The notes under the pieces were generated by a model. That model saw only the letters and a program-made list of their open reading frames with translations. It ran no database searches and had not been told where the DNA came from. From contig NIVC01000027.1 in the NCBI GenBank assembly GCA_002269645.1, positions 620,001 through 684,000 on the forward strand: a DNA stretch of 64,000 nt, read 5' to 3'. A program made the translations under genes and the position numbers. Positions 12,721 to 47,242 of this stretch are shown in pieces. The DNA comes from Macrostomum lignano. Lineage: Eukaryota. Numbering within the stretch: the first letter of the stretch is position 1; every line of letters begins with the position of its first letter.

Positions 12721-12776
12721 AAATCAACAACAACAACAATAACAACAACAAAAAACAACAAAAACAACAACAACAA

Positions 12777-12826
<50 letters not shown>

Positions 12827-13036: not shown

Positions 13037-14304
13037 ATAATTCTCCTCCGGCCACGAGTCAGCCACGGAAGGAGAGGTTTCGAAATGCACGCCTTTGGCC
13101 CGCACTTCTTAAGGTTTATTTTCAGTGCCAAGCGGAGGCTATCGCATCCCTCAGAAGCAGCTAACTGGGGGTATCGCGTCGCTCGCCCTTAAGCCTCATC
13201 TCCGCCAGATCTCTCCCACCAGATCATTAGCTTGTCTAACATCGGATCCGCTCCATGTTTACGAGGGATTTCAGGCAAACATTTTCTGTGGTTAGATACT
13301 TAGTCTTACTTATATTCTGCAGCTGGATATTTGCCACATTCTTGTGCCCGTGTATTAAAGCCATGTGTTGAGCGGTAGTTCCACTCTTATCACCTTGCCA
13401 ACTCTGACGTCCTTGGCTGCAGTCTTAAACTCTGACAAGTTCATCGTTGATCAAAGAAAAACTTAAGCCTATGGAGCCTTGATCTTTCAGAAGAGCTTTT
13501 CAATATTGCCCAGACATGGCCATCTGTCTTTTTGCAACATTCGCCTCAACAAGCGCGCGCTTGCTAACTGATATGAAAATGCTTGTTAGATATTTTGAAC
13601 GCAAAAAACATGTTCCATTAAATACGTTATATTGTTGTCCTATAAATTTATTTGTACCTGAAGTGTGCAAACTTTAATCCCATGAGTGAAATACTCTCGT
13701 ACCTAAAAAATAGCAAGTGCTTTATCGAATAAACAAATTTTCGAGAGACAAAAGCTATAATAGCAACTGCAGAGCCTGATTTACAGTATGTACATAGCAT
13801 TACAGTACACGGTATTATAGCATCTAGATAGAAGCATGCTCTCACTGGGACAAAAGTAGCGACTTATACAAGGTTGCTTTGTGCTAAAATTAAACGCAGA
13901 TAATGCAGAAAAATAGTAGACATAAGCCACGCAAACAAGACAGCCAATCGAAATTGTCTTTTACGCGATGTAAAAACAAAGCAAAAATAATGTGCATCTG
14001 TCTACTGACGACTAATGCGCGTCAGTAGAGTGTCTCGCGGGGGCCGTAAGGGAATACTGCTCTATTGAATCTGCACTAGACGAATAGGTAAACAACGGAA
14101 AAGTACAGTTTCTTTCCAACGAAACTCCTTACCCAGTTAAACAAAAATGACGAAACGCTATTGAAACCAAATCGAAGAAACAGACAAACAGACACAGAAA
14201 GACTAATGACGACATAATATTGAACTTCTCGGGAATAAAATCTACATGTGTAAATAGAGTTCGGAACTTAATAGTGGGGGAATAGTGCAGCCTGTGGGTG
14301 CACT

Positions 14305-15672: not shown

Positions 15673-15721
15673 CTGTCAGGGATTTTCATTTCGAGACTAG
15701 TCTTTTAGCTACTGTTAGCTA

Positions 15722-15905
15722 CTATTAGTGCCAGTTCGGCGTCTGTTAGTGCCATTTTGCTGTCTATTAGTGCCATTTTGCTGTCTATTAGTGCCTTTTT
15801 GCTGTCTATTAGTGCCATTTTTCTGTCTATTAGTGCCATTTTGATGTCTATTAGTGCCTTTTTGCTGTCTATTAGTGCCATTTTGCTGTCTATTAGTGCC
15901 ATTTC
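15722..15905. repeat. 21-bp tandem repeat (TATTAGTGCCATTTTGCTGTC), about 8 copies
   Basis: Direct reading; 7-aa ORF periodicity. Confidence 0.95.
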
Positions 15906-16765
15906 AGCGACTTTCAGTGCCATTTCGGCGTCCTTAGTTTCATTTGTCACCTAGCGCTACTGAAGTTTTACAACTTACTGCCATTTACACATCTTTTTTT
16001 CAGTAATTTTGATGTTGACAAGTGCATAAAAAATTGTCAATCAAAGAAGATAAAAAGCTATTTTTGCAAAAGCCTTGAGCGCGTTTTAAATTCTGTATCC
16101 ATCCACTGCTTCTTTCCTGCTGTACTGCCTGCCCTCCTAGGCGCTTAACCTTCCCCCATAACTCCCCTCTTTCTCTCCGATGACGATAAATAAATTGGTA
16201 ACAATTCCATTCGCCGTCAGACTCTCTGCAGCAAAACAATGCTTGGCTGCTGCGGCTAAAAGCAAAAAAACAGCCTTCAATTCTGCAGATCTATTGTTGA
16301 ACCCCTGGCCCAGAGAATAAAAGCAATTTAAAATAATTCCTAATAACAGATTAGAGTGCCTTCATCGGCCCAGCAGCCTCGAAATGCCGTTGAAATTGGG
16401 GCTTGGTTTCCAATTAAATTGCGAGCTGCAAAAATTAAAATTTCAGCCGACTAGTCTAGAGCAGTTTTATTTATAATTAACGGCGAAGCTAATAAAAAAA
16501 TCTTCTAATAATCTTGTGCTCAAGAATAACGATTCAAAATTCAAAGATTTCAGCAACGAACGACCCATGGGAGCGCCAGGTTGATTGAAAATCTGAATAT
16601 TATTCAGACAAACGTGCCTGGATGCTGGTGCCTTGCAAGATCTGACAGAAAGAAAGCCTTGAAAACTAAGTTTTGTTAGCTAAGAACTCTGGTATTCAGC
16701 TGTGAGGCTCAAACGAAGTTCCTGATGATAAATTCATAGATTAGAATCATTCCAACAAGTGCAAA

Positions 16766-28920: not shown

Positions 28921-29526
28921 AGATTTAGAGATTGCATTAGAGTATTCCCTGCGACTTCAGATATTTTTGCATTGGTATTCTGATTAAAACCAAACTTGAG
29001 ACAAACTTTAAACGTTTCTGCTTCAGTTTTGCGATTGCAGGGGCATCGAAGGCACCCATCAGCTGGCCAGTGGTTAAAAAGTGAATTTCTAAACTACTTA
29101 TTTCGCAATTCGCCTCCTGGTTTCTGGCTCTGCCAAATTCCCAAATCATCATGTCACAGTGCCCTCATCTCCGTTCTCATTTCGTAGAACTCGTGGAGTT
29201 TCCAGCTGTGGGCTTGTGAAAGCACTCACTGACTACTGTTGAGTAGCAGTTCGAGTTTTGTAGTTGAGTCTGAGCAGAACACTAAATTAACAATACGATA
29301 ATGTAATGTGCCCCAGCTGTTTATGTTTGCACTAATCTGATTCACCACAACAAAGAAGTTTCTAATTCGAAATTCGCAATCAATAAATGGAGTTGGCTTG
29401 CAAAAAAATATTATTCTTTTTTGGAATTTTGTTTGCATCCGTTTTGAAAGAGGATCCGCAGTCGCACACTGACTGCTTTAAGTAGCCACGCACTGACATT
29501 GCGGCGAATCTGCTGTTCTCTCAGAG

Positions 29527-29639
29527 CCAATGGGAGAGGCAGAAAGCTGGGCAGAGGCGGCCGCACAAGCCAGCAAAAGCAGCCGCAATCTGAGCAGGCA
29601 GGGTAAGAAGGAACTCGCTGCAGCTGCTCCAGGGCCAAT
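29527..29639 (+). promoter_or_regulatory. Paired CCAAT motifs upstream of the ANK-kinase ATG
   Basis: CCAAT at 29527 and 29635, both conserved in the paralog (42168, 42276); function inferred. Confidence 0.3.
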
Positions 29640-29683
29640 AAAATCTGCTGCAGAGGCGGCCGCTGCCCTGCCGGACTCTCGGG

Positions 29684-29790
29684 CTGAGCTGAGACACCTG
29701 CGGCTGAGCTGAGACACCTGCGACTGAGCTGAGACACCTGCGACTGAGCTGAGACACCTGCGACTGAGCTGAGACACCTGCGGCTGACGG
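29684..29790. repeat. 20-bp repeat (CTGAGCTGAGACACCTGCGA) x5 just upstream of the ATG
   Basis: Five copies here; one partial copy in the paralog at about 42325. Confidence 0.9.
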
Positions 29791-29805
29791 ACTGAGCTTG
29801 CTGCC

Positions 29806-32498
29806 ATGGCAGAGCGAGGGAAGCCACCATTTCCTGACAAAAAAGTAAGTAAAGTTCAAGTAAAAAAACTAAAAGTATAATCATATTTGTAGTCTTGACT
29901 GCAGTTGCAGGAACTCACTCACATGTTTGAATGTGCAGCTTGGGTGCCTCAATTGCAGTTGCAGGAACTCACTCACATGTTTTAATGTGCAGCTTGGGTG
30001 CCTCAATTGCAGTTGCAGGAACTCACTCACATGTTTTAATGTGCAGCTTGGGTGCCTCAATTGCAGTTGCAGGAACTCACTCACATGTTTTAATGTGCAG
30101 CTTGGGTGACTCAATTGCAGTTGCAGGAACTCACTCACATGTCTGAATGTGCAGCTTGGGTGCCTCAATTGCAGTTACAGGAACTCACTCAGCCGGACCC
30201 CACCAACCGGGCAAGCGTTGGATCCTCACCAGCCGATCTCCAAACTCTCGCTAACGCCGTCATCCGAGGTGACTTCGGCCAGGTGCGGCGGCTGGCAACG
30301 CGCCAGCTGGTCACCAGCGCTGACGCAGCTCGTCGGACCGTCCTCATGCTGGTGGCCGACGCTCCTGAGACTCCCGTACAGACTGAAAAGTGCATCTTGT
30401 ACTTATTTGAGCTGGGCGCGAACCCCAAGGCGGCTGACGCGAACGGCGACACGGCTGCGCACCTGGCAGCCCGGCGGGACCACCTGCGGCTGCTGACGCT
30501 GCTGTCGTTCGATGCGAAGTGGCTGCGGAACGACAACGGCGCCACTCCGCTGATGGAGGCGGCGCGGACTGGAAGCTGGAAATGCGCCAAGCACCTGCTG
30601 CACCTGCTCAGGCAGAGGAGGTCCAACGAGTGCAAGGAGCACGAAAACTCGAAGAGATCGCGGCTGCTCGGACTGCAGGATCGCGAGGGTCGGACGGCGT
30701 CGGACCTGGCGAGGCTCAGCGGCCACTCAGAGCTGGCCAGCTACATCGAGCGGTGAGTGAGCAGTTCGCTGCTGTGTCCATCAAGTTCTGCAGGATTCGG
30801 CTGGCTATGGTGGCCAGAGCTGCAGTCTCAGGCCAGCCAATCAGAGCCAGTCAGCTGAGCTTGTCTCTGTCTGACTGCTTGATGGGCGAGAGCTGTGATT
30901 AGCTGGCTGCCTCCCAGCCAATGGGGTGCCGGTTGATCTCAGTCGAGAATGGAAGCTGTAGGGCCTCGGTGTGCAGTGAGAGTGTGTGGGTTGAGTTGCA
31001 GATGGAGAACTGAGAGGCTGTGCGTGAGTGCTTTGTGAGACATGGTGAGATGGAAGGAAACTCATGCTGCAGAAATGGAAAATGAGCTGCATGTGAGAAG
31101 TCGGATGCGCTCTCGCCAATGCTGGTTGTTGCAGAGCTGCTTTAGTCTTCTTGGAAACTCCATCTGCGAGCTGCTCAGATAATCAGAAAATTCAGTTATC
31201 TAAATTTATTACCAAAATTCTATTGTAGAACTATAAACTTTTTAATGGCTGTCAAAGTTGTAAAATTTTAGAAAATTTGCTGCTCATTTTGGCTGTTGCA
31301 GGGAACAGCACATACAGCTACAGCACACAGCTACAGCACACAGCTACAGCACACAGCTACAGCACACACAGCTACAGCACACAGCTACAGCACACACAGC
31401 TACAGCACACAGCTACAGCACACAGCTACAGCACACACAGCTACAGCACACAGCTACAGCACACAGCTACAGCACACACAGCTACAGCATGCAAATTATC
31501 CCTCATTGCCTCAATTCGCATCCCCTCAGCCCCCCGTTCCTGGAGCGCTGGGACAAAGTTCGCCTCATCGGTCGCGGAGGCTCTGGCAAAGTCCACGAAG
31601 TTCGAACTGACACGGGCGTAACGTGCGCTGCCAAGACTCTCAAACTGCCTGTGCAGCTCGGTGATGACCAAACCCCTGTGAGCAAGGAGATCCACAGAGC
31701 TGTCGAGAGCGAGAGAAACCTGTGCCGACTGCGGCATCCCAACATCGTCAGGTTCTTGCACATCGCTCAGCCGAAGCCCGCCAAAGTCGTTGTGTTCATG
31801 GAGCTGCTGGACGGCCGAAGCTTGGAGAGGTTTATCGGCAACAAGCCGCTGGACGAGCCAAAGATTCGAGACTTCAGCGAGCAGGTGAGCATTGTGCATC
31901 CTTGATGCTCCTGTTCCATGTTTTCATGAATGATGACTGCTCACTGACCGACCGCTCGCAGATCTGCAGCGCGCTGCTCTACCTGCACAGCCAGCAGCCG
32001 CCCGTGATCCACAGAGACATCAACTGCTCCAACATAATGGTTCGTGCTGACAACACGCGAATCAAGCTGATCGACTTCGGCCTGTCAATCAAGCTGGAGC
32101 AGTCAGTCAGCCACATCTCAGGCTCCACTCCGTTTCCCAAAGGCACTCTGAACTTCATGGCGCCAGAGCTGCTCGGAGCGGGAGAGTCGGACAGCGTGCA
32201 GTACAGCAGAGAGTCGGACATCTGGGCGTTCGGCTGCTCGGTCTTCCAGATGACGTCTGGTGCGAGGCCGTTTTCAAAGTGCAGCAACCCATGGGCGGTG
32301 CCCGAGCTGCTCAAGAAGAGCGGCGCCCCTGCCCTGCCGGATGGCCGGTCCGCAGAGCTTCAGGATTTCTACAGCCGCTGCACCGCCAAGGATCGCAGGA
32401 GGAGAAAATCCGCACAGGAGCTGCTGGAGCACGAGTTCCTGACTGGCGGGAGGCTGCAGCCGGGATTATTCAGCTCGCTTTTCAGCGCAAGGAAATGA
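29806..32498 (+). CDS. Ankyrin-repeat + Ser/Thr kinase (MAP3K/STE11-like) fusion protein, about 500 aa
   Basis: Exons 29806-29844 (GCCATGG, MAERGKPPFPDKK|gtaagt), 30181-30752 (ANK repeats GDTAAHLAA, GATPLMEAA, GRTASDLA; cg|gtgagt), 31530-31884 (IGRGGSG, AAK, E of helix C, LRHPNIV, VFME), 31962-32498 (HRDINCSN, DFG, GTLNFMAPE, SDIWAFG). Intron phases 0/2/0 match; total 1503 nt = 501 codons. Confidence 0.85.
29901..30192. repeat. 54-bp intronic tandem repeat whose last unit supplies the exon-2 acceptor
   Basis: GCAGTTGCAG|GAACTCACTCACATG... starts at 29911, 29965, 30019, 30073, 30127 and 30181. Confidence 0.92.
31305..31488. repeat. ACAGCTACAGCAC(AC) 13/15-bp satellite, short copy
   Basis: Same repeat as 44727-45922. 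Confidence 0.95.
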
Positions 32499-32519
32499 CA
32501 GACACCGGTCAATAACCAA

Positions 32520-32700
32520 AAGTAGACAGAGAGTAGACAAAGAGTAGACAAAGAGTAGACAAAGAGTAGACAAAGAGTAGACAAAGAGTAGACAAAGAGT
32601 AGACAAAGAGTAGACAAAGAGTAGACAAAGAGTAGACAAAGAGTAGACAGAGAGTAGACAAAGAGTAGACAAAGAGTAGAGACAGAGTAGAAAAAGGGTA
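32520..32700. repeat. 10-bp repeat (GAGTAGACAA)n
   Basis: Direct reading, just 3' of the kinase stop codon. Confidence 0.95.
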
Positions 32701-33460
32701 GAGAGCTCTGCAGAGCTGAGTCACTTATACTACAGTTTCAAATCGTACTGGTAAACCGAAAAGCATGTGCTACATGTGCATGTAGAAATTTCCAACCCAG
32801 AATTAAAGTACACTCTGTCACAGTTCAGATTAGAAAACCATAAACTGGCCTGCGAAACGATGAGGACTGCGAGACCAAAGATGCCTTAGAAAAATGGGAC
32901 CTGCCCAAAGTGCCGTGTGGGGGTGGAAAGCGAAGTTCAGCTCCTGTTTAAGTGCACTTTAACTGTTATAGTGCTCCCAGTGATAAACTTTAACAGAAAA
33001 TCCTCAATAAAATGTTGAATTTTAACAATGCTAATTTCCTAATAAGTCTGGAAGATGAAGACACCGAAAATTCATCAGACAGAATGCAGCATCCCTGGGC
33101 CTTTATATCAGTACCAATAAAAACTGGCTCAAATACTCTGCGTATCAGATTTTGATTTCTTTTCCGTAATGTAGAAGTTTTCATTCACTAACTGGAACAA
33201 CTTGTGCTTATTTTTCAAAAATAATAGTATTGCCACCAATAATAACAGTTTTCATGTGCAGATTGCACAGCCAGTTTGATTACTGAAGTTTCAATTGAGA
33301 ATCCTCTGCTCAGCTCAATAGCTTTTTTCTGCTTGCCAAATTTTCTTTCCCCGCTGTCATGGAAACTACAGGCCGGTTGTTTGCTTTGATGATTTTGTTC
33401 TTTTGAGTTCTTGTTGGTTTGAATTTCCAGCTTTCTTCTCTGAGCTGAATTTGTAACACG

Positions 33461-35416
33461 CAATGCATGTGTTGGGCTGTTTATTTACTCAGATACTCCA
33501 GTTCCTGCTGATGCCATCTCACTGAGCTCACTGAGCAGCAATGCATGTGTTGGGCTGTTTATTTACTCAGATACTCCAGTTCCTGCTGATGCCATCTCAC
33601 TGAGCTCACTGAGCAGCAATGCATGTGTTGGACTGTTTATTTACTCAGATACTCCAGTTCCTGCTGATGCCATCTCACTGAGCTCACTGAGCAGCAATGC
33701 ATGTGTTGGACTGTTTATTTATTCAGATACTCCAGTTCCTGCTGATGCCATCTCACTGAGCTCACTGAGCAGCAATGCATGTGTTGGACTGTTTATTTAT
33801 TCAGATACTCCAGTTCCTGCTGATGCCATCTCACTGAGCTCACTGAGCAGCAATGCATGTGTTGGACTGTTTATTTACTCAGATACTCCAGTTCCTGCTG
33901 ATGCCATCTCACTGAGCTCACTGAGCAGCAATGCATGTGTTGGACTGTTTATTTATTCAGATACTCCAGTTCCTGCTGATGCCATCTCACTGAGCTCACT
34001 GAGCAGCAATGCATGTGTTGGACTGTTTATTTATTCAGATACTCCAGTTCCTGCTGATGCCATCTCACTGAGCTCACTGAGCAGCAATGCATGTGTTGGA
34101 CTGTTTATTTATTCAGATACTCCAGTTCCTGCTGATGCCATCTCACTGAGCTCACTGAGCAGCAATGCATGTGTTGGACTGTTTATTTATTCAGATACTC
34201 CAGTTCCTGCTGATGCCATCTCACTGAGCTCACTGAGCAGCAATGCATGTGTTGGACTGTTTATTTACTCAGATACTCCAGTTCCTGCTGATGCCATCTC
34301 ACTGAGCTCACTGAGCAGCAATGCATGTGTTGGACTGTTTATTTATTCAGATACTCCAGTTCCTGCTGATGCCATCTCACTGAGCTCACTGAGCAGCAAT
34401 GCATGTGTTGGACTGTTTATTTATTCAGATACTCCAGTTCCTGCTGATGCCATCTCACTGAGCTCACTGAGCAGCAATGCATGTGTTGGACTGTTTATTT
34501 ATTCAGATACTCCAGTTCCTGCTGATGCCATCTCACTGAGCTCACTGAGCAGCAATGCATGTGTTGGACTGTTTATTTACTCAGATACTCCAGTTCCTGC
34601 TGATGCCATCTCACTGAGCTCACTGAGCAGCAATGCATGTGTTGGACTGTTTATTTATTCAGATACTCCAGTTCCTGCTGATGCCATCTCACTGAGCTCA
34701 CTGAGCAGCAATGCATGTGTTGGACTGTTTATTTACTCAGATACTCCAGTTCCTGCTGATGCCATCTCACTGAGCTCACTGAGCAGCAATGCATGTGTTG
34801 GACTGTTTATTTATTCAGATACTCCAGTTCCTGCTGATGCCATCTCACTGAGCTCACTGAGCAGCAATGCATGTGTTGGACTGTTTATTTACTCAGATAC
34901 TCCAGTTCCTGCTGATGCCATCTCACTGAGCTCACTGAGCAGCAATGCATGTGTTGGACTGTTTATTTACTCAGATACTCCAGTTCCTGCTGATGCCATC
35001 TCACTGAGCTCACTGAGCAGCAATGCATGTGTTGGACTGTTTATTTACTCAGAGGCTCCAGTTCCTGCTGATGCCATCTCACTGAGCTCACTGAGCAGCA
35101 ATGCATGTGTTGGACTGTTTATTTACTCAGATACTCCAGTTCCTGCTGATGCCATATCACTGAGCTCACTGAGCAGCAATGCATGTGTTGGACTGTTTAT
35201 TTACTCAGATACTCCAGTTCCTGCTGATGCCATCTCACTGAGCTCACTGAGCAGCAATGCATGTGTTGGACTGTTTATTTACTCAGATACTCCAGTTCCT
35301 GCTGATGCCATCTCACTGAGCTCACTGAGCAGCAATGCATGTGTTGGACTGTTTATTTACTCAGATACTCCAGTTCCTGCTGATGCCATCTCACTGAGCT
35401 CACTGAGCAGCAATGC
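33461..35416. repeat. 78-bp satellite, about 25 copies
   Basis: Unit CAATGCATGTGTTGGACTGTTTATTTA(T/C)TCAGATACTCCAGTTCCTGCTGATGCCATCTCACTGAGCTCACTGAGCAG; period 33461 to 33539. Confidence 0.97.
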
Positions 35417-35654
35417 AAAACTGCAATTCAGATATTCGGAAACAAAGCACTCATTATTTTCAACACTTAGCTGGGGTTTGCTCTCAGTCACGCAGCTACA
35501 GGACTCAAAAGCTGCGGACTGATGCAGGAGAGACGCTGGGAATTACAGAAACCTCCCAAGAAATCCCGTATAGAATTCGAATTTCGGTGGGCGAGACTGC
35601 AAGATGGAGAGCAGAGGCTGGTCTTCAATGCAGCTCCACCCCCTGTCCCAGTCC

Positions 35655-35945
35655 CTGCTGCATCCATTCGGTCTGAACTCTCAGCTCAAAGCTGCAGGCA
35701 TAAAGTTAATCAGCTGCATCCATTCGGTCTGAACCCTCAGCTCAAAGCTGCAGGCATAAAGTTAATCAGCTGCATCCATTCGGTCTGAACTCTCAGCTCA
35801 AAGCTGCAGGCATAAAGTTAATCAGCTGCATCCATTCGGTCTGAACTCTCAGCTCAAAGCTGCAGGCATAAAGTTAATCAGCTGCATCCATTCGGTCTGA
35901 ACTCTCAGCTCAAAGCTGCAGGCATAAAGTTAATCAGCTGCAGCC
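35655..35945. repeat. 56-bp tandem repeat, about 5 copies
   Basis: GCTGCATCCATTCGGTCTGAACTCTCAGCTCAAAGCTGCAGGCATAAAGTTAATCA. Confidence 0.95.
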
Positions 35946-36427
35946 ACGACTGAATTGCAGCACAGTGCAGGCTGGACAACTCTTGTGCCAGTAAGAGATG
36001 CAGTCAGATAAGCCATGGCAACTGTTTACAGTATTTTAATGCTGCAGCAATGGCTAAGCTGAACTGTGATTACATAGCTGGCTCTAGGCGAACCATAAAC
36101 ACCATCAACTCTGCTTCTGCATCCTGTGCAGCCTCTCGGGTGCTTCACGCAGCTGCACCGCCACTCGCTCTTCCGGCGGGCCGCTGCGGTCTGCCTTGTA
36201 GCGTTGCTGCCTCATCAGCCTCTGCAGATCGGGTCTGATCGGAATCTCAGTGCGCACCTGATGAAGCTCTGTGCGAGTCTGGGTGGCGAGATGCATGCTG
36301 TGCAGCATGGCTCAGATGGCTGCGGGGTTAATTCGACATGATGTAGTTTCTGGTGCACAGACCTTTGCCAGAATTCAATTAACCTGTTTGCACAATGGTC
36401 AGAAAATCACGGCCATTATAATAATCT

Positions 36428-36540
36428 GCTGACGCATCACAGCTCACGATTTGCATGGGGACGCTGAGTAGTCACTGCTGCTGACACATCACAGCTCACG
36501 ATTTGCATGGGGACGCTGAGTAGTCACTGCTGCTGACACA
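36428..36540. repeat. 52-bp tandem duplication
   Basis: GCTGAC.CATCACAGCTCACGATTTGCATGGGGACGCTGAGTAGTCACTGCT occurs twice. Confidence 0.85.
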
Positions 36541-36579
36541 CGAGTGCGCTAATTCTCACTGCATTGGCTGGCATATGGG

Positions 36580-37280
36580 CTGGATTGGTGAATGGGCTGG
36601 CTTGGTGAATGGGTTAGATTAGTGAATGGGCTGGGTTGGTGAATTGGCTGGCTTGGTGAATTGGCTGACTTGGTGAATTGGCTGGCTTGGTGAATACGCT
36701 GGCTTGGTGAATTGGCTGGCTTGGTGAATAGGCTGGCTTGGTGAATTGGCTGACTTGGTGAATTGGCTGGCTTGGTTAATTGGCTGGCTTGGTGAATTGG
36801 CTGGCTTGGTGAATTGGCTGGCTTGGTGAATGGACTGGATTGGTGAATTGGCTGGCTTGGTGAATGGACTGGATTGGTGAATGGGCTAGATTAGTGAATG
36901 GGCTGGCTTGGTGAATGGGCTGGATTGGTGAATTGGCCGGCTTGGTGAATGGGCTGGATTGGTGAATTGGCTGGCTTGGTGAATAGGCTGGCTTGGTGAA
37001 TAGGCTGGCTTGGTGAATTGGCTGGCTTGGTTAATTGGCTGGCTTGGTGAATTGGCTGGCTTGGTGAATTGGCTGGCTTGGTGAATGGACTGGATTGGTG
37101 AATGGGCTAGATTAGTGAATGGGCTGGCTTTGTGAATGGGCTGGATTGGTGAATTGGCCGGCTTGGTGAATGGGCTGGCTTGGTGAATGGGCTGGATTGG
37201 TGAATGGGCTGGATTGGTGAATGGGCTGGATTGGTGAATGGGCTGGATTGGTGAATGGGCAGGATTGGTGAATTGGCTGG
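36580..37280. repeat. 17-bp minisatellite (GGCTGGCTTGGTGAATT)
   Basis: Direct reading. Confidence 0.95.
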
Positions 37281-38119
37281 CTCCCCTGTCACCGCAGTGG
37301 CTGAGTTCGCTAAGAACCATGCAGGACCCGAGAGAAGCGGAAGAGTCGAGAGGAGGCGGCATTTCTGAGTCGCTGCAGAAGCCGAGCAGTCGTGAGCAGC
37401 GCAGCGATGCTCAGCCAGCCGGCAACTCCAGCTGCTCAAAGCACAGAATGCTGAATCGATCAAAACATGCAACAAAATAAATTCATCACATGCTACTCCT
37501 GGGGTGAAGCGATTCGTGAGTAGTGCTCAAGTGCATTGCCATAAACATGTCAAAATGGCAGCAAAAGCTGCTGCAGCTTCTGAGCTGCTCAGCCGTGAGC
37601 ACACAGAAGAGCGGCTATAATCTCTCTCGACTCTGCACTCTCGCACGAGGCCTCACCACAGGTGCGGAGCTCAACCAGCAGTAATGCGAGCGACACCAAG
37701 AAGTGCAGAGTTTCCAACAGAAGACCTGCTTCTGCAGATCAACGGAAGGTGCGACGTCTCCCCCCCCCCAAAATGTAGGATGTCTAATGATGAGGCTGAT
37801 GAGCATTTTGTAACCTGTTGCTGCCCAATTTGCTCAACTGTAATTGCTTATTGAGCTGCTTGTGACGCTAACTGCTTTTTGTCTGCTTAATATCAAAATC
37901 TAATGTAATTGTTTAATGTTTACTGTTCGATGTTCAATTTAGTCTTAGCTTACCTCCAGTCACATTAATCTCGCTGTAAATAAGTGTATCCACAAATACT
38001 TTTATATTATTGTGTAGTCCTGTGCAAATTTCAAATGCTATTAAAACTACTACTTTTTTATTCTTCACCTCAGGAGTAATATCTATAGCGTTTTATTTCG
38101 ACTTTCAACTTCAAGTCTC

Positions 38120-39812
38120 TATTCACTGAGATTATCCAGTCTCTGTTCACTGAGATTATCCAGTCTCTGTTCACTGAGATTATCCAGTCTCTGTTCACTG
38201 AGATTATCCAGTCTCTGTTCACTGAGATTATCCAGTCTCTGTTCACTGAGATTATCCAGTCTCTGTTCACTGAGATTATCCAGTCTCTGTTCACTGAGAT
38301 TATCCAGTCTCTATTCACTGAGATTATCCAGTCTCTATTCACTGAAGTTACCCAGTCTCTGTTCACTGAGATTATCCAGTCTCTGTTTACTGAGATTATC
38401 CAGTCTCTGTTTACTGAGATTATCCAGTCTCTATTCACTGAGATTATCCAGTATCTATTCACTAAGATTATCCAGTATCTATTCATTGAGATTATCCAGT
38501 CTCTATTCACTGAGATTATTCAGTCTCTGTTCACTGATATTATCCAGTCTCTGTTTACTGAGATTATCCAGTCTCTATTCACTGAGATTATCCAGTCTCT
38601 ATTCACTGAGATTATCCAGTCTCTATTCACTGAGATTATCCAGTCTCTGTTCACTGAGATTATCCAGTCTCTATTCACTGAGATTATCCAGTCTCTGTTC
38701 ACTGAAGTTATCCAGTCTCTGTTCACTGAGATTATTCAGTCTCTGTTCACTGAGATTATCCAGTCTCTGTTCACTGAGATTATTCAGTCTCTGTTCACTG
38801 AGATTATTCAGTCTCTGTTCACTGAGATTATCCAGTCTCTATTCACTGAGATTATCCAGTCTCTATTCAGTGAGATTATCCAGTCTCTGTTTACTGAGAT
38901 TATCCAGTCTCTATTCACTGAGATTATCCAGTCTCTATTCACTGAGATTATCCAGTCTCTGTTCACTGAGATTATTCAGTCTCTGTTCACTGAGATTATC
39001 CAGTCTCTGTTCACTGATATTATTCAGTCTCTGTTCACTGAGATTATCCAGTCTCTGTTCACTGAGATTATCCAGTCTCTATTCACTGAGATTATCCAGT
39101 CTCTATTCAGTGAGATTATCCAGTCTCTGTTCACTGAGATTATCCAGTCTCTATTCACTGAGATTATCCAGTCTCTATTCACTGAGATTATCCAGTCTCT
39201 ATTCAGTGAGATTATCCAGTCTCTATTCACTGAGATTATCCAGTCTCTGTTCACTGAGATTATTCAGTCTCTGTTCACTGAGATTATCCAGTCTCTGTTC
39301 ACTGAGATTATCCAGTCTCTATTCACTGAGATTATCCAGTCTCTATTCACTGATATTATCCAGTCTCTGTTCACTGAGATTATCCAGTCTCTATTCACTG
39401 AGATTATCCAGTCTCTATTCACTGATATTATCCAGTCTCTGTTCACTGAGATTATCCAGTCTCTATTCACTGAGATTATCCAGTCTCTATTCACTGATAT
39501 TATCCAGTCTCTGTTCACTGAGATTATCCAGTCTCTGTTCACTGAGATTATCCAGTCTCTATTCACTGAGATTATCCAGTCTCTATTCACTGATATTATC
39601 CAGTCTCTGTTCACTGAGATTATCCAGTCTCTATTCACTGAGATTATCCAGTCTCTATTCACTGATATTATCCAGTCTCTGTTCACTGAGATTATCCAGT
39701 CTCTATTCACTGAGATTATCCAGTCTCTGTTCACTGAGATTATCCAGTCTCTATTCACTGAGATTATCCAGTCTCTATTCACTGAGATTATCCAGTCTCT
39801 GTTCACTGAGAT
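38120..39812. repeat. 24-bp minisatellite (TTCACTGAGATTATCCAGTCTCT(G/A)), about 70 copies
   Basis: 8-aa ORF periodicity (VNRDWIIS). Confidence 0.97.
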
Positions 39813-41176
39813 TGCTTTAGAACACCTGAGAAGATTTTAAGAGACTGCAGAGCACCTTAAAGCTGACAGTGGGATTCTGAGCCATTCGTGGAGATTCTGT
39901 GAGACTTCAGAAGAGCCTTAACGCACAGAGATGTATGCCAGCAAATGATTACATAAATATAGAATATATACGAGCTCCTACTGCAAATTAAGCATGTTGA
40001 GGAAAATTCTTCACCTGCTACCTGTAGTAGTATTTGTTAAGCAGTTGCGGAGGGAACTGAAACTGCGCACTCTGGAATCAAAATACACCAAAATTGCTCA
40101 TTCTTATGACATTTCATTTTATTATTACGCTAATATTTTTATTTGTAATATGGATTTAGGTATGTTTTACAAATTTCGAAATAGCAGGGCCATAACTTTG
40201 ATGGAGTCGGGGGCTCAGCCCAAGCTTTAGGACAATATTAGGGATTTTGTCAGGACCAGGAGCTCCTCAGAATCTTAGCTTTCTAATTTCCATTAATACG
40301 AATGTATCTGTGTCAAGAATATCCGGTTTATCTGATTCAGTGTCTTCTCTGTCGGGGTCATCAGGGTCAGCCCTGTCCCGGTGATATGAGAGAGGCTCTG
40401 ATAATGTAATCATGAGGGAAAATAGTTTTTTGGACTCAATGCAGGTCCTCAATTTCTATACAGTTTGGAATCCCTGCTGAGTTGAGGCTGCATCTGAGCT
40501 TCATGCAAATCTTGAAACAAGTATGCAGTCTCCTCTTCAGCCTCAGCTGAGGTTTCCTTGTAACTAAGGCTGGGGAAGGAGACGGGTTTGATTGACTCAG
40601 CCGTCATCTTTTTTATATCGACCCATAATTTGCGAAGTTCCATTCTATAACTGGTTTTAGCGACTTTTTACCGAAGTCTTTACATTTTCACAACGCTGCA
40701 TCCTGATAGAGCGCCTATTTTGTTTAGTCAGAACTCAAAAATTATAAATCCTGGTCTTTTTATAAACTTTGCTAAGTTTTTGTGTTTGATTCTACAGATA
40801 ATATCCGGAGACAGCGGCTCCGTGGATTCACGATCTGGGACAACTTCGTAGTAGATCCATCTGCAATTCGGCGCTCGGCGCTCTGCAATTCGGCGCTTCG
40901 GCTTTCGTCGCTCAGCCGCAGCCTCAACTGCTCTCCTACAGAAACTGAGGAACCCACACTGAGGATTCCAGAATATTCCATAAAAGTACATTGTTGAATT
41001 CTTCCCTCGCTTTCCAGAAACATCAATTGAAATTCTAAGTTGCTATCGGATATTCTAAATAATTGCATAGAACTTTATATGCACCTTAATATTTATATTT
41101 TTTACGTTTCTGGTTCTGTGTGCATGTATGTTAATGTTTAAAGACTTCAGTTTCTAATCTTCCCAGACATCTTCCC

Positions 41177-41805
41177 AGAGCAGCCCTGACAATCTTTATG
41201 TCAGCAACTCTGCCCCATAGCAGCCCTGACACTCTGTATGTCAGCAACTCTGCCCCGCAGCCGCCCTGACACTCTGTATGTCAGCAACTCTGCCCCGCAG
41301 CCGCCCTGACACTCTGTATGTCAGCAACTCTGCCCCACAGCAGCCCTGACAATCTTTATGTCAGCAACTCTGCCCCACAGCAGCCCTGACAATCTTTATG
41401 TCAGCAACTCTGCCCCACAGCAGCCCTGACACTCTGTATGTCAGCAACTCTGCCCCACAGCAGCCCTGACACTCTGTATGTCAGCAACTCTGCCCCGCAG
41501 CCGCCCTGACACTCTGTATGTCAGCAACTCTGCCCCGCAGCCGCCCTGACACTCTGTATGTCAGCAACTCTGCCCCGCAGCCGCCCTGACACTCTGTATG
41601 TCAGCAACTCTGCCCCGCAGCCGCCCTGACACTCTGTATGTCAGCAACTCTGCCCCACAGCAGCCCTGACAATCTTTATGTCAGCAACTCTGCCCCACAG
41701 CAGCCCTGACAATCTTTATGTCAGCAACTCTGCCCCACAGCAGCCCTGACACTCTGTATGTCAGCAAATCTGCCCCATAGCAGTCCTGACAATCTTTATG
41801 TCAGA
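41177..41805. repeat. 40-bp minisatellite (CAGCAGCCCTGACACTCTGTATGTCAGCAACTCTGCCCCA) with an internal CTGACA/TGTCAG inverted repeat
   Basis: Direct reading. Confidence 0.95.
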
Positions 41806-41858
41806 AAAACTGTGAGACTTCAGAAGAGCCGAAGCGTGAAAATTTAAGCTGAAGTAAC

Positions 41859-43640
41859 AGCTGTGAGATTGTGAAAGCACTCACTGACTACTGTTGAGTA
41901 GCAGTGCAAGTCTTGTAGTTGAGTCTGGGCAGAACACTTAATGAACAATAATGTGCTCAAGCTGCTTATGTTTGCGCTGATCTGCTTCACCGCAACAAAG
42001 TATTTTCAAATTCGAAATGCAATATCGATAATGGACTTGGCCTAAAATGATAATTATTTATATTGGATTTTGATTGCACCAATTTTGCAAGAAAATCCGC
42101 AGTCGCACACTGACTGCTTTAAGTAGCCACGCACTGACATTGCAGCAGTTCTGCTGTTCCCTCAGAGCCAATGGGAGAGGCAGAAAGCTGGGCAGAGGCG
42201 GCCGCACAAGCCAGCAAAAGCAGCCGCAATCTGAGCAGGCAGGGTGAGAAGGAATTCGCTGCAGCTGCTCCAGGGCCAATAAAATCTGCTGCAGAGGCGG
42301 CCGCTGCCCTGCCGGACTCTCGGGCTGAGCTGAGACCTTGGACGCCATGGAAGAGCGATTTAGAAAGATTTTTGAAGAAAGAGTAAGTAAAGTTAAAAGG
42401 AGCAAATTAAAGCATAATTTTTGTGGGTTCAATTGCAGTTGCAGGAACTCGCATGTTTGAATGTGCAGCTTGGGTGCCTCAATTGCAGTTGCAGGAACTC
42501 ACATGTTTGAATGTGCAGCTTGGGTGCCTCACTTGCAGTTGCAGGAACTCACTCACATGTTTGAATGTGCAGCTTGGGTGCCTCAATTGCAGTTGCAGGA
42601 ACTCACTCACATGTTTGAAAGTGCAGCTTAGGTGCCTCAATTACAGTTGCAGGAACTCACTCGCATGTTTGAAAGTGCAGCTTAGGTGCCTCAATTACAG
42701 TTTCAGGAACTCACTGAGCCGGACCCCAAAAACCGGGCAAGCGTCGGAGACTCACCAGCCGATCTCCAGACTCTCGCCTACGACGTCATCCGAGGTGACT
42801 TCGGCCAGGTGCGGCGGCTGGCAACGCGCCAGCTGGTCACCAGCGCTGATGCAGCTCGTCCGACCGTCCTCATGCTGGTGGCCGACGCTCCTGAGACTCC
42901 CGTGCACACTGAAAAGTGCATCTTGTACTCATTTGAGCTGGGCGTGAACCCCAAGGCGGCTGACGCAAACGGCGACACGGCTGCGCACCTGGCAGCCCGG
43001 CAGGACCACCTGCGGCTGCTGACGCTGCTGTCGTTCGATGCGAAGTGGCTGCGAAACGACAACGGCGCCACTCCGCTGATGGAGGCGGCGCGGACTGGAA
43101 GCTGGAAATGCGCCAAGCACCTGCTGCACCTGTTCAGATCGGAGATGTTGAATGGATCATGTTGTGGAGGTTGTTTAAGTACGTTCGTGCTGTTCGGACT
43201 GAAGGATCGCGAGGGTCGGACGGCGTCGGACCTGGCGAGGCTCAGCGGCCACTCAGAGCTGGCCAGCTACATCGAGCGGTGAGTGAGCAGTTGAGCAGTG
43301 AGGTGTGCAGTGAGAGTGTGTGGGTTGAGCTGCAGATGGAGAACTGGGAGGCTGTGCGTGAGTGCTTTGTGAGACATTGTGAGGTGGAAGGAAACTCATG
43401 CTGCAGAAATGGAAAATGAGCTGCGTGTGAGAAGTCGGATGCGCTCTCGCCAATGCTGATTGTTGCAGAGCTGCTGCAGTCCTCTTGGAAACTCCATCTG
43501 CGAGCAGCACAGATAATTGGAAATTTCTGTTTACTAAATTTATCATGAAAATTAAATTGTACAACTTAAAATTTTTTGTGACAGTAGTTGTCGTATTTGA
43601 GAAAACTGCAAATTCGCTGCTCCTTTTTACTGTTTCAGGG
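41859..43640 (+). repeat. Segmental duplication copy 2
   Basis: Colinear with 29203-31303; lacks about 170 bp present in intron 2 of copy 1 (about 30775-30965). Confidence 0.92.
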
Positions 43641-46600
43641 AGATGGGGCTGGGTATAGATGATGATGGCTCTATCTCCGGCCTGGGAGACCAGGTGAGCG
43701 GCATCTGCGGTGCCGATGCGGCTGCAGCTGAGCAGCTGTGCTCAAATTTCCCGTTCCCCTTTGCAGGAGGCAGATCGACAGGAACTGCAGCGGCTGGCCG
43801 AGGCGGGCGACTCGGCGGGGCTGCGGCGAGCGGCGACCCGCGGCAGCTGCGACCTGCCTGACAGATCGGGTCTCACCCCGTTGATGTGGGCAGCTCGGAA
43901 CAGCTCGTGCGGTGATGAGGCTCTGTGGGAGCAGCTGGTGCAGCTGGGTGACCCCACCTGTGCGGATAGATGGGCTCGCAGTTGCCTGCACCATGCAGCC
44001 AGGGCTGGCAATTCTGCCGCAGCCTCCGCTCTGCTGGCTGCCGGAGCCTCCGCCAATGCCAGGGATGACTCTGACCCCACGCCCCTCATGTGGGCAGCCA
44101 AATTTGCGCCCCCCGCCACCGCCGCCGCAGTCGGTCGGGTTCTGCTGGACTCAGGGGCGGATTGGAGCCTGAACAGAAACGGCAGGACTGCGCTCGATTT
44201 GGCCGCACAGAATGGAAAGAGCAAACTGGCTGAGCTGCTGCGTGGGTGAGTTTCCATGGCGACTGAGAATGTCTCTCTGACTTTGATTTATCATTGATAA
44301 ACATTATGCTGTAATTTATGATTGAATATTGAGCAGCTGACTGCAGTTGCTCTGAGTGGGCATTTTTACATTTTTGTAGTTTACATTTTTGTAGTTTGTA
44401 GTTTAAATGGGCAGCAGAAACTGACTGAGCTGCATTGAGGGAGTTTGCAGTGCATTTTGACTGCAGATTGCCAGTTGAATAATAATGCTCAGCTGCCTGC
44501 GAGCTGTGAGACACCAAGCAAGCGATTTTCTGTAGCATTAGAGTTCAATTTTAACATGTGAATTTTTTGTGTATTTTTTTCAATTTTTTGTAATTATTTA
44601 ACAGAAAAAACACTGGCACAAAGCATGTGCTCCCATGTGAATTTCTGTGACTTCAGACTCCGCACTGCCCATTTAGGTACGACGGCAAGAATTACTTTAA
44701 CGAACCTCTGGAACTGCCGTGAGTTCCTTCAGCACACAGCTAAAGCACACAGCTACAGCACACACAGCTACAGCACACACAGCTACAGCACACACAGCTA
44801 CAGCACACAGCTACAGCACACACAGCTACAGCACACAGCTACAGCATACAGCTACAGCACACAGCTAAAGCACGCAGCTACAGCACACAGCTACAGCACA
44901 CACAGCTACAACACACAGCTACAGCATACAGCTACAGCACACACAGCTACAGCACACAGCTAAAGCACGCAGCTACAGCACACAGCTACAGCACACACAG
45001 CTACAGCCACACAGCTACAGCACACAGCTACAGCACACACAGCTACAGCACACAGCTAAAGCACGCAGCTACAGCACACAGCTACAGCACACACAGCTAC
45101 AACACACAGCTACAGCACACACAGCTACAGCACACAGCTAAAGCACACAGCTACAGCATACAGCTACAGCACACAGCTACAACACACAGCTACAGCACAC
45201 ACAGCTACAGCACACACAGCTACAACACAGCCACAGTACACACAGCTACAGCACACACAGCTACAGCACACAGCTAAAGCACGCAGCTACAGCACACAGC
45301 TACAGCACACACAGCTACAACACACAGCTACAGCACACACAGCTACAGCACACAGCTAAAGCACACAGCTACAGCATACAGCTACAGCACACAGCTACAA
45401 CACACAGCTACAGCACACACAGCTACAGCACACACAGCTACAACACAGCCACAGTACACACAGCTACAGCACACACAGCTACAACACACAGCTACAGCAC
45501 ACACAGCTACAGCACACACAGCTACAGCACACAGCTACAGCACACACAGCTACAGCACACAGCTACAGCATACAGCTACAGCACACAGCTAAAGCACGCA
45601 GCTACAGCACACAGCTACAGCACACACAGCTACAACACACAGCTACAGCACACACAGCTACAGCACACAGCTACAACACACAGCTACAGCACACACAGCT
45701 ACAGCACACACAGCTACAACACACAGCCACAGTACACACAGCTACAGCACACACAGCTACAATACACAGCTACAGCACACACAGCTACAGCACACACAGC
45801 TACAGCACACACAGCTACAGCATACAGCTACAGCACACACAGCTACAGCACACACAGCTACAACACACAGCTACAGCACACACAGCTACAGCACACACAG
45901 CTACAACACAGTTACAGCACACCGAGGTGAGAAAACTGCATAGCGTTTTGGCTTATTACAGGCGAAGAGTTGTCACGGACCATGCTCATGACGAGGAACC
46001 GAGTGATGATGAAAGTTCTTCGTGAGTGATTTTTCTAATTATGTGGTATTTAAAAACTATTTACTCATTGAATTGTGCAATTGAATTTATTCCTGTGTCA
46101 ATTTTTAAAAATTCAGAAACCCTAAAGGAGCCACGAGCGTTAAAGCAGTTCGACATCAACCGTCAAGGTGGTTAATACATAATTATTCGTGTGCATTTAA
46201 AGTGTAAAACCACATTGAGTATCTGCTGTATTCCATGCAGGTACGAAGAAGATTTCTATCCAGTGACGAACCCGCAAGGCTACTGCTTGATCATCAACAT
46301 CAGCGAGTACGACTCCGGAAGTGACATCACATTAAATTTTGAAGAGCGTCAAGGTTCAGATCGTGATGTTGACCGAGTGAAGCAGATATTCGAGAGGCTG
46401 CGCTTCATCGTCAAGATAAAAAAGGACCTCACTGCTGAGCAGTTGGATGATTTCCTCCATGAGATTAAAAAGTCACCGGACCTTGCCAAGCACGGCAGTT
46501 TTGTCTGCTTCTTGATGGCGCACGGCAGCCACGACTGCATCTACGGTAAGAACGGCGTGCCCTGCGAAATTCGAAACCTGACGGAAAAGTTCAAGGTAAG

Positions 46601-47242
46601 CCACTATAGCTAATAATATCATGTTTGTTATTTTATGAGCGTATATGAGCAATAACAGGGATATGAAAATCCCTAAGAATTCTTAAGAGTAGAAACCAAT
46701 GATATTGAAACGAGAGTAATGTTTAGCCTGTTTTTCGTCGCTGCAAAAGGCTAGGCTAAACTGTACTCTTAGTTTATAAGGCCGAAGACTCCACTGCCAA
46801 TACCATCGCATCACAGAGCTCTGTCTGCCGCAGCCTTGAAGGAAAGCCGAAGGTGTTCTTCATCCAGGCCTGTCGCGGCAGCCGTCGCGACCGAGCTGTT
46901 GCTCGGAGCTCTCGTGAGCAAACGGACGAGGCAGGCGCTCCGGTGTACAACTCCGCAATCCGCCCTGCAGAGGGCGACTTTCTGCTCTGCTACGCCACCA
47001 CTCCAGGCTCAGCCGCCTTTAGAAACATCGACTCGGGCTCGCGGTACGTGCAGACTGTTTGCGAGTTCATCGAGAAGTACTTCCGTGAGCTCGACCTAAT
47101 TACCATTATGACCAAGGTGAGCGGCTACTTGCACAAAAACCCGGTTCAGGTGAAAGGCGGCCTGTATCACGTTGTTCCGCAGAAAGTCGACCAGCTTTCA
47201 AGCCTGGTTAGCTTCGATCCAGAAAGAGCTCGGAAAGTTTAG
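42347..47242 (+). CDS. Ankyrin-repeat caspase (two ANK modules + caspase p20/p10), about 677 aa
   Basis: Exons 42347-42382, 42707-43278 (ANK module 1), 43639-43693 (linker), 43767-44245 (ANK module 2: GLTPLMWAA, SCLHHAA, PTPLMWAA, GRTALDLAA), 45962-46021, 46117-46167, 46241-46595 (GYCLIIN, RQGSDRD, FLMAHG), 46817-47242 (GKPKVFFIQACRG, DFLLCYATTPG, AFR..GS.YV). All introns are GT-AG with matching phases 0/2/0/2/2/2/0; total 2034 nt = 678 codons. Confidence 0.85.
42433..42718. repeat. 50/54-bp intronic tandem repeat containing the exon-2 acceptor (paralog of 29901-30192)
   Basis: GCAGTTGCAGGAACTC units; the last unit reads TTTCAG|GAACTC at 42706/42707. Confidence 0.9.
44727..45922. repeat. ACAGCTACAGCAC(AC) satellite, long copy (about 1.2 kb)
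   Basis: Direct reading; lies in the intron between ANK module 2 and the caspase linker exon. Confidence 0.97.

Follow-up and report, generated by a model that had tools for sequence, protein, structure and literature searches.

A modular ankyrin-repeat family of the flatworm Macrostomum lignano, in which a putative recognition module is combined with kinase and caspase domains

We analyzed a 64,000-nucleotide stretch of the Macrostomum lignano genome (hereafter the window; positions 620,001 to 684,000 of contig NIVC01000027.1, forward strand, assembly GCA_002269645.1), in which two tandem genes on the same (+) strand, here called gene A and gene B, encode ankyrin (ANK) repeats followed by a protein kinase and by a caspase, respectively. 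An original prediction made from the window sequence had proposed a modular sensor-effector family. We consider it likely that the two genes belong to such a family, in which a variable recognition module is combined with kinase or death effectors; the modular architecture is well supported, while the function is plausible, on account of the hypervariability of the second of two ANK modules. The first module (ANK1) is encoded by an exon present in both genes and the second (ANK2) is found in gene B and in dozens of paralogues. The pattern of ANK2 variation points to a recognition repertoire, and a genetically tractable animal may carry receptor-like ankyrin proteins wired straight to caspases and kinases. 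Unless another contig is named, coordinates are those of the window, and related protein models are designated P0001, P0002 and so on.

Variability of the two modules was calculated with 17 close paralogue proteins of both effector types, and codons were compared in three DNA copies for ANK2 and four for ANK1. In all four repeats of ANK2, the binding-surface positions (beta-turn positions 2, 3 and 5 and helix positions 13 and 14) are variable, with a mean entropy of 2.30 bits versus 0.49 elsewhere in the module (permutation p = 5e-5). The variable positions are those randomized by protein engineers in designed ankyrin binders. ANK1 is nearly invariant (mean entropy 0.34 bits) except for one loop, which is the loop replaced as a block in gene B, and the equivalent binding positions are also invariant (0.37 versus 0.34 bits). 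When gene B was compared with a kinase-type locus (L002, described below), nonsynonymous (dN) and synonymous (dS) divergences were 0.93 and 0.19 for the 20 ANK2 binding codons and 0.084 and 0.083 for the remaining codons; at the binding codons there are 26 nonsynonymous differences per 49 sites, against 11 synonymous differences per 126 sites in the comparison (Fisher p = 1e-9). The dN/dS ratio is 5-11 at the binding codons and approximately 1 outside them. Variation among paralogues is concentrated on the predicted binding surface with nonsynonymous exceeding synonymous change, which is the pattern looked for in a recognition repertoire. The sensor idea of the original prediction therefore holds in part: canonical binding positions are hypervariable in ANK2, but the exon common to both genes encodes the invariant ANK1, and gene A is without ANK2.

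In ANK1, dS is 0.04-0.10, which is about half of that in ANK2 and below the 10-14% divergence of the non-coding flanks of genes A and B, and the dN/dS ratio (omega) is 0.6-1. Because of this low synonymous divergence combined with omega of 0.6-1, the uniformity of ANK1 suggests concerted evolution rather than demonstrable purifying selection; core ANK1 motifs persist in the most diverged family members.

The variability of ANK2 could also be explained without any sensor repertoire, if the ANK repeats were a recruitment domain, replacing DED or CARD, of a lineage-specific apoptotic or developmental pathway, and if ANK2 varied through relaxed constraint on exposed positions and patchy conversion among many recent polyploid duplicates. 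We regard this explanation as doubtful. Neutrality predicts dN/dS near 1, which is observed outside the binding codons and agrees with the explanation there, but not at the binding codons themselves, where the ratio is 5-11. Patch replacements and exon mosaics do point to frequent conversion, and a recent large-scale duplication is known in M. lignano (PMC5730564); conversion from diverged copies, however, would lift dS as much as dN. ANK caspases have been read as initiator caspases of a flatworm-specific apoptotic route (PMC11463336), which fits a recruitment role, but the same structural positions are invariant in ANK1 and therefore are not free to vary by default.

Three further loci were mapped for comparison: a caspase-type locus (L001; NIVC01003438.1, gene at 10001-15978, encoding P0001), the kinase-type locus L002 (NIVC01000414.1, encoding P0009) and a locus encoding both kinase and caspase (L003). 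The modules are arranged in the order of a short exon 1, an array of 54-nucleotide repeats, the ANK1 exon, a link exon, the ANK2 exon, a "YDGK" mini-exon, an intron containing an ACAGC-type microsatellite, and the effector exons. L001 and L002 have this layout in common, except that the 54-nucleotide array, which is present in L002 and in both window genes, was not picked up in L001 at the score cut-off applied. Since the layout upstream is alike in L001 and L002, the difference between kinase and caspase genes starts inside the microsatellite intron. Phase 2 marks the end of the ANK1 exon, both ends of a 534-nucleotide unit made up of the link and ANK2 exons, both ends of each small linker exon, and the start of both effectors. 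Because every boundary between ANK and effector is in phase 2, modules can be dropped or exchanged without a break of the frame, and new receptor-effector combinations would arise by recombination in the repeat-bearing introns. With phase-matched modules, tandem-repeat bounds and kinase, caspase, both or other C-termini, the family offers a clean natural case of exon shuffling. Two further features were noted in L002 (1-2934 and 11882-15165): another family member lies directly 5' of the P0009 gene, showing tandem clustering there too, and in the P0009 gene itself the link exon is duplicated, with a 1.3-kb ACAGC microsatellite between the copies.

All strong protein matches to genes A and B are from M. 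lignano, including all of the 76 matches to gene A at E ≤ 1e-30. From these searches the ANK1-ANK2 family appears to be large, with dozens of paralogues in M. lignano, and has so far been found only in this species. The original prediction had suggested cataloguing what lies downstream of other ANK copies, and in the M. lignano proteome the C-terminus was found to be a kinase, a caspase, the two together, or something else; a second ANK type is also present. The C-terminus is a kinase in, for example, P0005, P0009, P0010 and P0012, with two kinase domains in P0011, and a caspase in P0001, P0004, P0019, P0020, P0025 and P0030; P0039 has ANK-ANK-kinase-caspase in one open reading frame (ORF) of 1060 amino acids. 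In other members the C-terminus is a long domain-less region (P0035 and P0036), further ANK repeats (P0041), or nothing. A second, unrelated ANK pro-domain is fused to the kinase lineage of gene A (P0168, P0169 and P0200) and to the caspase lineage of gene B (P0125). At least nine distinct clusters of ANK-caspase proteins are present in the proteome. As separate observations, two or three tandem kinase domains occur in one model in P0011 and P0162-P0165, and in P0035/P0036 ANK1-ANK2 is followed by a "YDGT.YFE" linker and a C-terminal region of about 570 amino acids, possibly a third effector type, for which no Pfam or PDB sequence match was found.

The BOX15_Mlig proteins in GenBank come from an RNA-seq transcript assembly with ORFs called by TransDecoder (PMC5730564). 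Transcript-based fusions include ANK-ANK-caspase (P0001), ANK-ANK-kinase (P0009, P0010 and P0012) and ANK-ANK-kinase-caspase (P0039), for the last of which there are three loci and three independent models derived from WormBase. These RNA-based models confirm the family fusions in paralogues. It is very improbable, in our view, that the ANK exons and the enzyme exons are instead separate genes, with coincidental in-phase junctions and with fused models being assembly artefacts. Such a view could appeal to the public models that are ANK-only (P0003, ending in "...AMP" and a stop), kinase-only (P0166, with an ATG equivalent to 31489) or caspase-only (P0121), and to the polycistronic precursors that make up about 7% of the transcript assemblies of M. 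lignano (PMC5730564). Co-transcription is not enough, however, since one ORF across the modules requires real splicing. The kinase-only and caspase-only models are truncations, because they start without Met or inside translated microsatellite. Retention of the introns also bears on ANK-only transcripts: the donors at 30753, 43279, 44246, 44719 and 46022 all read xx/GTGAGT (the slash marks the exon end), and retention at these phase-2 donors gives an immediate in-frame TGA, which may explain many of the ANK-only public models and could yield truncated isoforms. Against separate genes, every junction is in phase, three cassette exons of gene B (see below) are open in all eight combinations, and in transcript-based ORFs from many loci conserved linker exons run on without a break into both the ANK and the effector parts.

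In a neighbor-joining tree of ANK1, kinase-type, caspase-type, kinase-caspase and other forms are interleaved; in trees of the sequences sampled, the family caspases are monophyletic, and so are the family kinases. The kinases of P0168 and P0169 are 83-84% identical to that of gene A and are attached to the unrelated second ANK type, which makes them clear cases of recent pro-domain exchange. The interleaving could, alternatively, have resulted from fission or differential loss of an ancestral ANK-ANK-kinase-caspase gene of P0039 type without swapping, a possibility that we take seriously without favoring it. In its favor, P0039 takes a basal position in all three trees (ANK1, kinase and caspase), the branching orders of caspase and ANK1 are broadly congruent, and the kinase intron of P0039 (L003) is at the same position as in gene A. 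The caspase tree was rooted on vertebrate caspase-9 and places P0039 at the family base; the neighbor-joining trees of ANK1 and kinase were rooted on P0039 by choice and thus do not test its basal position, which is not independent in them. No kinase-plus-caspase form was seen among the close ("crown") paralogues, genuine module exchange also takes place, as the different ANK type on a crown kinase demonstrates, and the common microsatellite intron at the breakpoint fits recombination.

Gene B represents the complete arrangement of the caspase type. The first model consisted of six exons (42347-42382, 42707-43278, 43639-43693, 43767-44245, 46241-46595 and 46817-47242), all with GT-AG introns, giving an ORF of 640 amino acids. 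Exon 1 (42347-42382) contains the ATG and encodes MEERFRKIFEER, and an array of 5.5 copies of a 54-nucleotide repeat, found with Tandem Repeats Finder (TRF), straddles the acceptor of the ANK1 exon (42429-42715). The original prediction had given the ANK1 exon a length of 572 nucleotides in both genes; the lengths are indeed equal, but four transcript-based paralogues use an acceptor 6 nucleotides upstream ("LQELTQPDP" in P0003, P0009 and P0012 and "LQQLTQPDP" in P0010), so that the exon has 578 nucleotides (42701-43278 in gene B) and gains "LQ" in gene A and "FQ" in gene B. Its description of the two exons as near-identical was slightly generous, since identity is about 90% overall and 96% outside a block of about 55 nucleotides. 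That block (~43135-43194) is of equal length and wholly replaced in gene B relative to gene A and all paralogues, RQRRSNECKEHENSKRSRLL being changed to RSEMLNGSCCGGCLSTFVLF. No donor for it was found elsewhere in the window, and nothing similar in other paralogues; it recurs only in P0197, a WormBase-derived model of the same gene, which joins the gene B ANK1 exon with this unique patch to the link exon.

The link exon of gene B (exon 3, 43639-43693, 55 nucleotides, phase 2 to 0) has a homologous "EMRLVV..G.ISGLT.Q" segment in all paralogues, and exon 4 (43767-44245) encodes ANK2, with four repeats hypervariable at the canonical binding positions, and ends in phase 2. The single intron of 44246-46240 in the original prediction did not hold, because three further cassette exons conserved in the family lie within it. 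Exon 5 (44677-44718, 42 nucleotides, phase 2 to 2), identified by tblastn and splice sites, encodes YDGKNYFNEPLEL, a motif conserved in kinase-type and caspase-type paralogues. It is followed by a 1.2-kb ACAGC-type microsatellite (44733-45922, TRF), located in the intron between the common and the effector-specific exons, as in L001 and L002. Exon 6 (45962-46021, 60 nucleotides, phase 2 to 2) is an acidic cassette, RRVVTDHAHDEEPSDDESS, which the public model P0121 splices to 46241, and exon 7 (46117-46167, 51 nucleotides, phase 2 to 2) is an optional basic cassette, NPKGATSVKAVRHQPS, with canonical splice sites and a homologous segment in P0001 and P0002. The three cassettes match the segments that join ANK2 to the caspase in P0001 and P0002, and all eight include/skip combinations are in frame and give proteins of 642-693 amino acids. 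Exon 8 (46241-46595) starts in phase 2 and encodes the N-terminal part of the caspase p20 subunit with the catalytic His in MAHGS, and in the gene model exon 9 (46817-47242) encodes the QACRG active site, the intersubunit linker EQTD/E, p10 and the stop.

The caspase moiety of gene B is 100% identical to P0121 (UniProt A0A1I8GRA2, M. lignano). In P0122, which is 97% identical to the gene B caspase, ANK2 ("...AELLRG") is joined directly to "HEEDFYPV", and in P0156, which has no ANK2, ANK1 is followed directly by the caspase linker. With its GT-AG junctions, uninterrupted predicted ORF and Pfam domains, gene B is by predicted architecture a canonical ANK1-ANK2-caspase, i.e., an "ANK caspase". 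The same kinds of evidence agree with the proposal that the ANK exon is spliced in phase to a kinase in gene A and, via a second ANK module, to a caspase in gene B.

In gene A, the first model consisted of four exons (29806-29844, 30181-30752, 31530-31884 and 31962-32498), all with GT-AG introns, and gave an ORF of 500 amino acids. Exon 1 (29806-29844) contains the ATG, encodes MAERGKPPFPDKK and ends in phase 0 at the donor AAAAAA/gtaagt; this N-terminus matches MAQRGKSPFPDER of the transcript-based P0009. A tandem array of 5.4 copies of the 54-nucleotide repeat straddles the ANK1-exon acceptor (29900-30191, TRF), the same array being at the same place in gene B and L002. Exon 2 (30175-30752, 578 nucleotides; Pfam Ank_2/Ank) encodes ANK1 and ends in phase 2. 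Homology between the two genes stops at 43641, 3 nucleotides into exon 3 of gene B: gene A has a link-exon remnant (31296-31304), consisting of the acceptor TTGCAG and the first three nucleotides GGA, and then directly an ACAGC-type microsatellite with a period of 13/28 nucleotides (31305-31489, TRF), which is 84-95% identical to the gene B array and ends 41 nucleotides 5' of the kinase exon. An ACAGC-type array precedes the kinase exon in L002 as well, and the sequence 3' of the gene A microsatellite matches the pre-kinase intron of L002. Because the link acceptor and GGA are kept and are followed by the microsatellite and by this matching intron, an internal deletion in a kinase-type gene is indicated, with its left breakpoint at the link-exon remnant. 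Judging from these matches, gene A is a canonical kinase-type gene minus the link, ANK2 and YDGK exons, with ANK1 predicted to be joined straight to the kinase.

Exon 3 of gene A (31530-31884) starts in phase 2 and encodes the kinase N-lobe (GRGGSG, AAK); at the protein level it shows 100% identity with P0005, where this acceptor is used after ANK2. Exon 4 (31962-32498; gene model and Pfam) encodes the C-lobe (HRDINCSN, DFG, GTLNFMAPE) and the stop, with 92% identity to P0170 and 83% to P0005. Since the N-lobe is identical to that of P0005 but the C-lobe is closer to P0170, gene A is a mosaic at the exon level.

On another reading, gene B would be a true ANK caspase and gene A a derivative that lost its function with the deletion, or else the deletion itself would be an assembly error, and the pairing of the two would be incidental; this we judge unlikely. 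Gene A lacks the link, ANK2 and YDGK exons of canonical kinase-type paralogues, its junction occurs in no public protein, and the right breakpoint is in a microsatellite that is hard to assemble. The left breakpoint, however, is in unique sequence 3 nucleotides into the link exon, which is atypical for repeat collapse and argues against a simple collapse in the assembly. The ORF is intact with all kinase motifs kept, the kinase is in frame with ANK1 from either candidate acceptor (31530, or the remnant at 31302 with read-through of the microsatellite), and P0156 provides a precedent for loss or skipping of ANK2.

Self-BLAST of the window supports the original account of two same-strand paralogues with a duplicated block, in three collinear parts with 86-90% identity: 29203-29695 versus 41858-42336 (88%), 29840-30766 versus 42378-43292 (89.7%) and 30968-31304 versus 43302-43641 (86%). 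The block includes a putative promoter/5' untranslated region upstream of gene A (29203-29805, 88% identical to 41858-42336) and the corresponding region upstream of gene B (41858-42346), and the ACAGC-type microsatellite is common to both genes (31305-31489 and ~44730-45920). No third family member was found in the window by tblastn with both proteins. Given the 10-14% divergence of the copies and the presence, elsewhere in the genome, of a closer relative of each, an assembly-duplication artefact is unlikely, and the duplication of 29203-31304 and 41858-43641 appears to be genuine paralogy. The ANK1 copies of the two genes are not each other's nearest relatives: in the ANK1 neighbor-joining tree, gene A is nearest to the kinase-type P0005 and gene B to the caspase-type P0001/P0002. 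For the same reason, conversion within the tandem pair was rejected as what keeps the ANK1 copies alike. L001 was also considered as the orthologous locus of the window and rejected, as the flanking genes differ.

For gene B, Pfam reports two Ank blocks and Peptidase_C14 (PF00656, 1e-44, 153 bits versus a cut-off of 21.4). The nearest structures of its caspase are caspase-3/7 (2e-39), with the His, QACRG and S1 Arg residues aligned. The catalytic dyad motifs MAHGS and QACRG are present, and ERQGS and FRN align with caspase-3 SRSGT and WRN, which we take to hold its two S1 Arg residues. By score threshold and catalytic motifs, the domain belongs to the caspases (peptidase family C14A), and its activity is predicted. 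There is a conserved Asp before "FYPVT" (YEED/F in gene B), and most paralogues keep xxxD in the intersubunit linker (EQTD/E in gene B); these Asp residues are plausible candidate autoprocessing sites. P0001 of L001 has QAGRG for QACRG and no Asp in the intersubunit linker, and this family member is therefore probably a pseudo-caspase devoid of catalytic activity.

For gene A, Pfam reports Ank and Pkinase (1.5e-49, 169 bits). All of the Gly-rich loop GRGGSG, AAK, HRDINCSN, DFG and MAPE are present in the kinase, and the best PDB matches are MAP3K5 (ASK1), MAP2K5 and MAP3K2 (1e-25 to 3e-27), followed by PAK, WNK, TNIK and PLK (~1e-24). The predicted Ser/Thr kinase is therefore closest to the STE group and is MAP3K-like, with several STE and other kinases scoring nearly alike. 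Neither NACHT/NB-ARC nor a KEN/RNase domain was found by Pfam in genes A and B, and for the former the proteins of 500-693 amino acids leave no unassigned stretch long enough.

ANK caspases are a flatworm-specific class first noted in Schistosoma (Lee et al., 2014) and surveyed recently (Genome Biol Evol 2024, PMC11463336), where they were described as restricted to parasitic flatworms. In platyhelminth ANK caspases, an N-terminal ANK pro-domain stands in place of CARD or DED, and gene B has exactly the same architecture. The family described here differs in that M. lignano is free-living, that the pro-domain has two modules (invariant ANK1 and hypervariable ANK2), that there are dozens of paralogues, and that the pro-domain is shared with kinase genes. 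The presence of at least nine ANK-caspase clusters in a free-living, early-branching flatworm conflicts with the parasite-only claim. The same survey reported an M. lignano caspase with a kinase pro-domain, placed as sister to the ANK caspases (PMC11463336). This is very probably P0039 and its copies, the deepest-branching family member; it was described as a single oddity, without ANK repeats, kinase-only or caspase-only relatives, or the shared exon architecture, and the lone "kinase pro-domain caspase" is the tip of a large family. The original prediction did not recognize the pairing of kinase and caspase as a described system. ANK caspases and the kinase-pro-domain caspase have in fact been published, but the family itself was not found described in the literature, nor were the abundance of ANK caspases in a free-living species, kinase genes with the same pro-domain, repeat-bounded phase-matched exons, or a hypervariable ANK2.

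We also searched 1.84 billion representative proteins exhaustively with the caspase by HMMER and looked for ANK repeats in 144 newly retrieved proteins among the best 150 matches. ANK repeats are present in two of the 144, both from M. lignano, and the nearest other relatives among those inspected include DED-caspases. Neodermatan ANK-caspase sequences were not recovered in the searches, the ANK-bearing proteins among the best 150 being M. lignano representatives only. M. lignano additionally has, in P0209/P0350, P0040 and P0265, Ras/Roc-caspase fusions, a Ras-ANK-kinase model and a distinct 599-amino-acid ANK-"caspase-8" in three copies, so that its caspases carry a broader range of pro-domains than the literature records.

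Fungal NLR/STAND proteins with ANK, TPR or WD repeats combine sensors with effectors including protein kinases (Dyrka et al., 2014, PMC4986451), and their ANK repeats show positive selection on concave-surface and beta-hairpin positions, together with concerted evolution and recombination among paralogues (PMC4986451). The M. lignano family resembles them in its diversifying concave ANK surface, concerted evolution and combinatorial effectors, and differs from them in the lack of NACHT/NB-ARC, the C-terminal position of the effectors, the animal host, and the variation among paralogues at a fixed repeat number. Because there is no NOD domain, the family is not NLR. In RNase L, a ligand is sensed by N-terminal ANK repeats, and the C-terminal enzyme, which has a kinase fold, is activated by dimerization. 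Genes A and B have no KEN/RNase domain and the gene A kinase is catalytically complete rather than a pseudokinase, and for these two reasons the family is not RNase L-like; unlike for RNase L, no evidence for a small-molecule ligand was found. The combination of ANK and a Ser/Thr kinase in one polypeptide is common in animals (TNNI3K, ILK, RIPK4/ANKK1 and DAPK1), and DAPK1 joins ANK, kinase, Roc and a death-fold domain. Those are single-copy conserved genes with kinases of the TKL or CAMK groups, whereas the M. lignano family is hypervariable and expanded, has its ANK shared with caspases, and in gene A has a kinase nearest to STE/MAP3K; parallels to DAPK1 in M. lignano are the Ras/Roc-caspase fusions and the Ras-ANK-kinase model P0040. 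In RIPK1/RIPK3-caspase-8 platforms, a kinase and a caspase are brought together by shared interaction modules and a choice is made between signaling and death. There, the modules are death, DED and RHIM domains encoded by separate conserved genes, whereas here a shared ANK array is hypothesized to achieve the co-recruitment.

In the mechanism we propose, ANK2 would be a diversified recognition surface and ANK1 a common docking or regulatory module. Binding of a target would cluster family proteins, and clustering would activate the caspase by induced proximity and autoprocessing at YEED/F (before p20) and EQTD/E (between the subunits) and the kinase by trans-autophosphorylation, so that one recognition scaffold would be coupled to a death output or a signaling output. 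We infer, as the original prediction did, that the family might act in innate immunity, that its members might heterodimerize and that proximity might activate them. More tentatively, the family may constitute a NOD-less intracellular receptor repertoire, in which a hypervariable ANK2 resembling designed ankyrin-repeat proteins (DARPins) senses pathogen or non-self proteins and drives a caspase or a MAP3K-like kinase through the invariant ANK1, the combinations being made by intron recombination. If so, this would be an animal counterpart of the diversification of fungal and plant NLRs, built from different parts. Since transgenesis is established for M. lignano (PMC5730564), the receptor-repertoire hypothesis is experimentally testable.

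Several points weigh against the proposed family of variable sensors and effectors. The models of genes A and B themselves are genomic predictions and the RNA support comes from paralogues; the public models of parts of gene B are fragments, P0121 being a caspase-only, 5'-partial model. The direct ANK1-to-kinase junction of gene A was found in no public protein model by homology searches, and translation of a kinase-only protein could begin at an in-frame ATG (31489), as in the model P0166 of a paralogue. Without the variable ANK2, gene A may be a decaying or regulatory derivative. The variability is that between paralogues, estimated from few DNA copies with neighbor-joining trees and pairwise Nei-Gojobori calculations in which recombination is uncontrolled, and for ANK1 an omega of 0.6-1 in four DNA copies does not show constraint at the protein level at that depth. 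The gene B-type caspase is closest in sequence to the executioner caspases-3/7, which are activated by cleavage and not by proximity. In the literature on the family locus tags and on Macrostomum caspases, no expression or functional data and no link to a ligand or infection were found.

Other features of the window were recorded. Directly 5' of the gene A ATG, TRF detected 5.2 copies of a 20-nucleotide repeat, CTGAGCTGAGACACCTGCGA (29684-29787), which gene B carries at the corresponding position as one copy only. Between the two genes lies a 24-nucleotide minisatellite of more than 70 copies (37970-39820), with 91-96% identity across the array core. The flanks of the window contain unrelated genes: upstream, exons of a Kv-type potassium channel with a T1 domain and the TTVGYGD pore motif (6900-12000, + strand), and downstream of gene B, a copia-like gag ORF (54747-55355, + strand) and exons of a kinesin-like motor (55585-59916, - strand).

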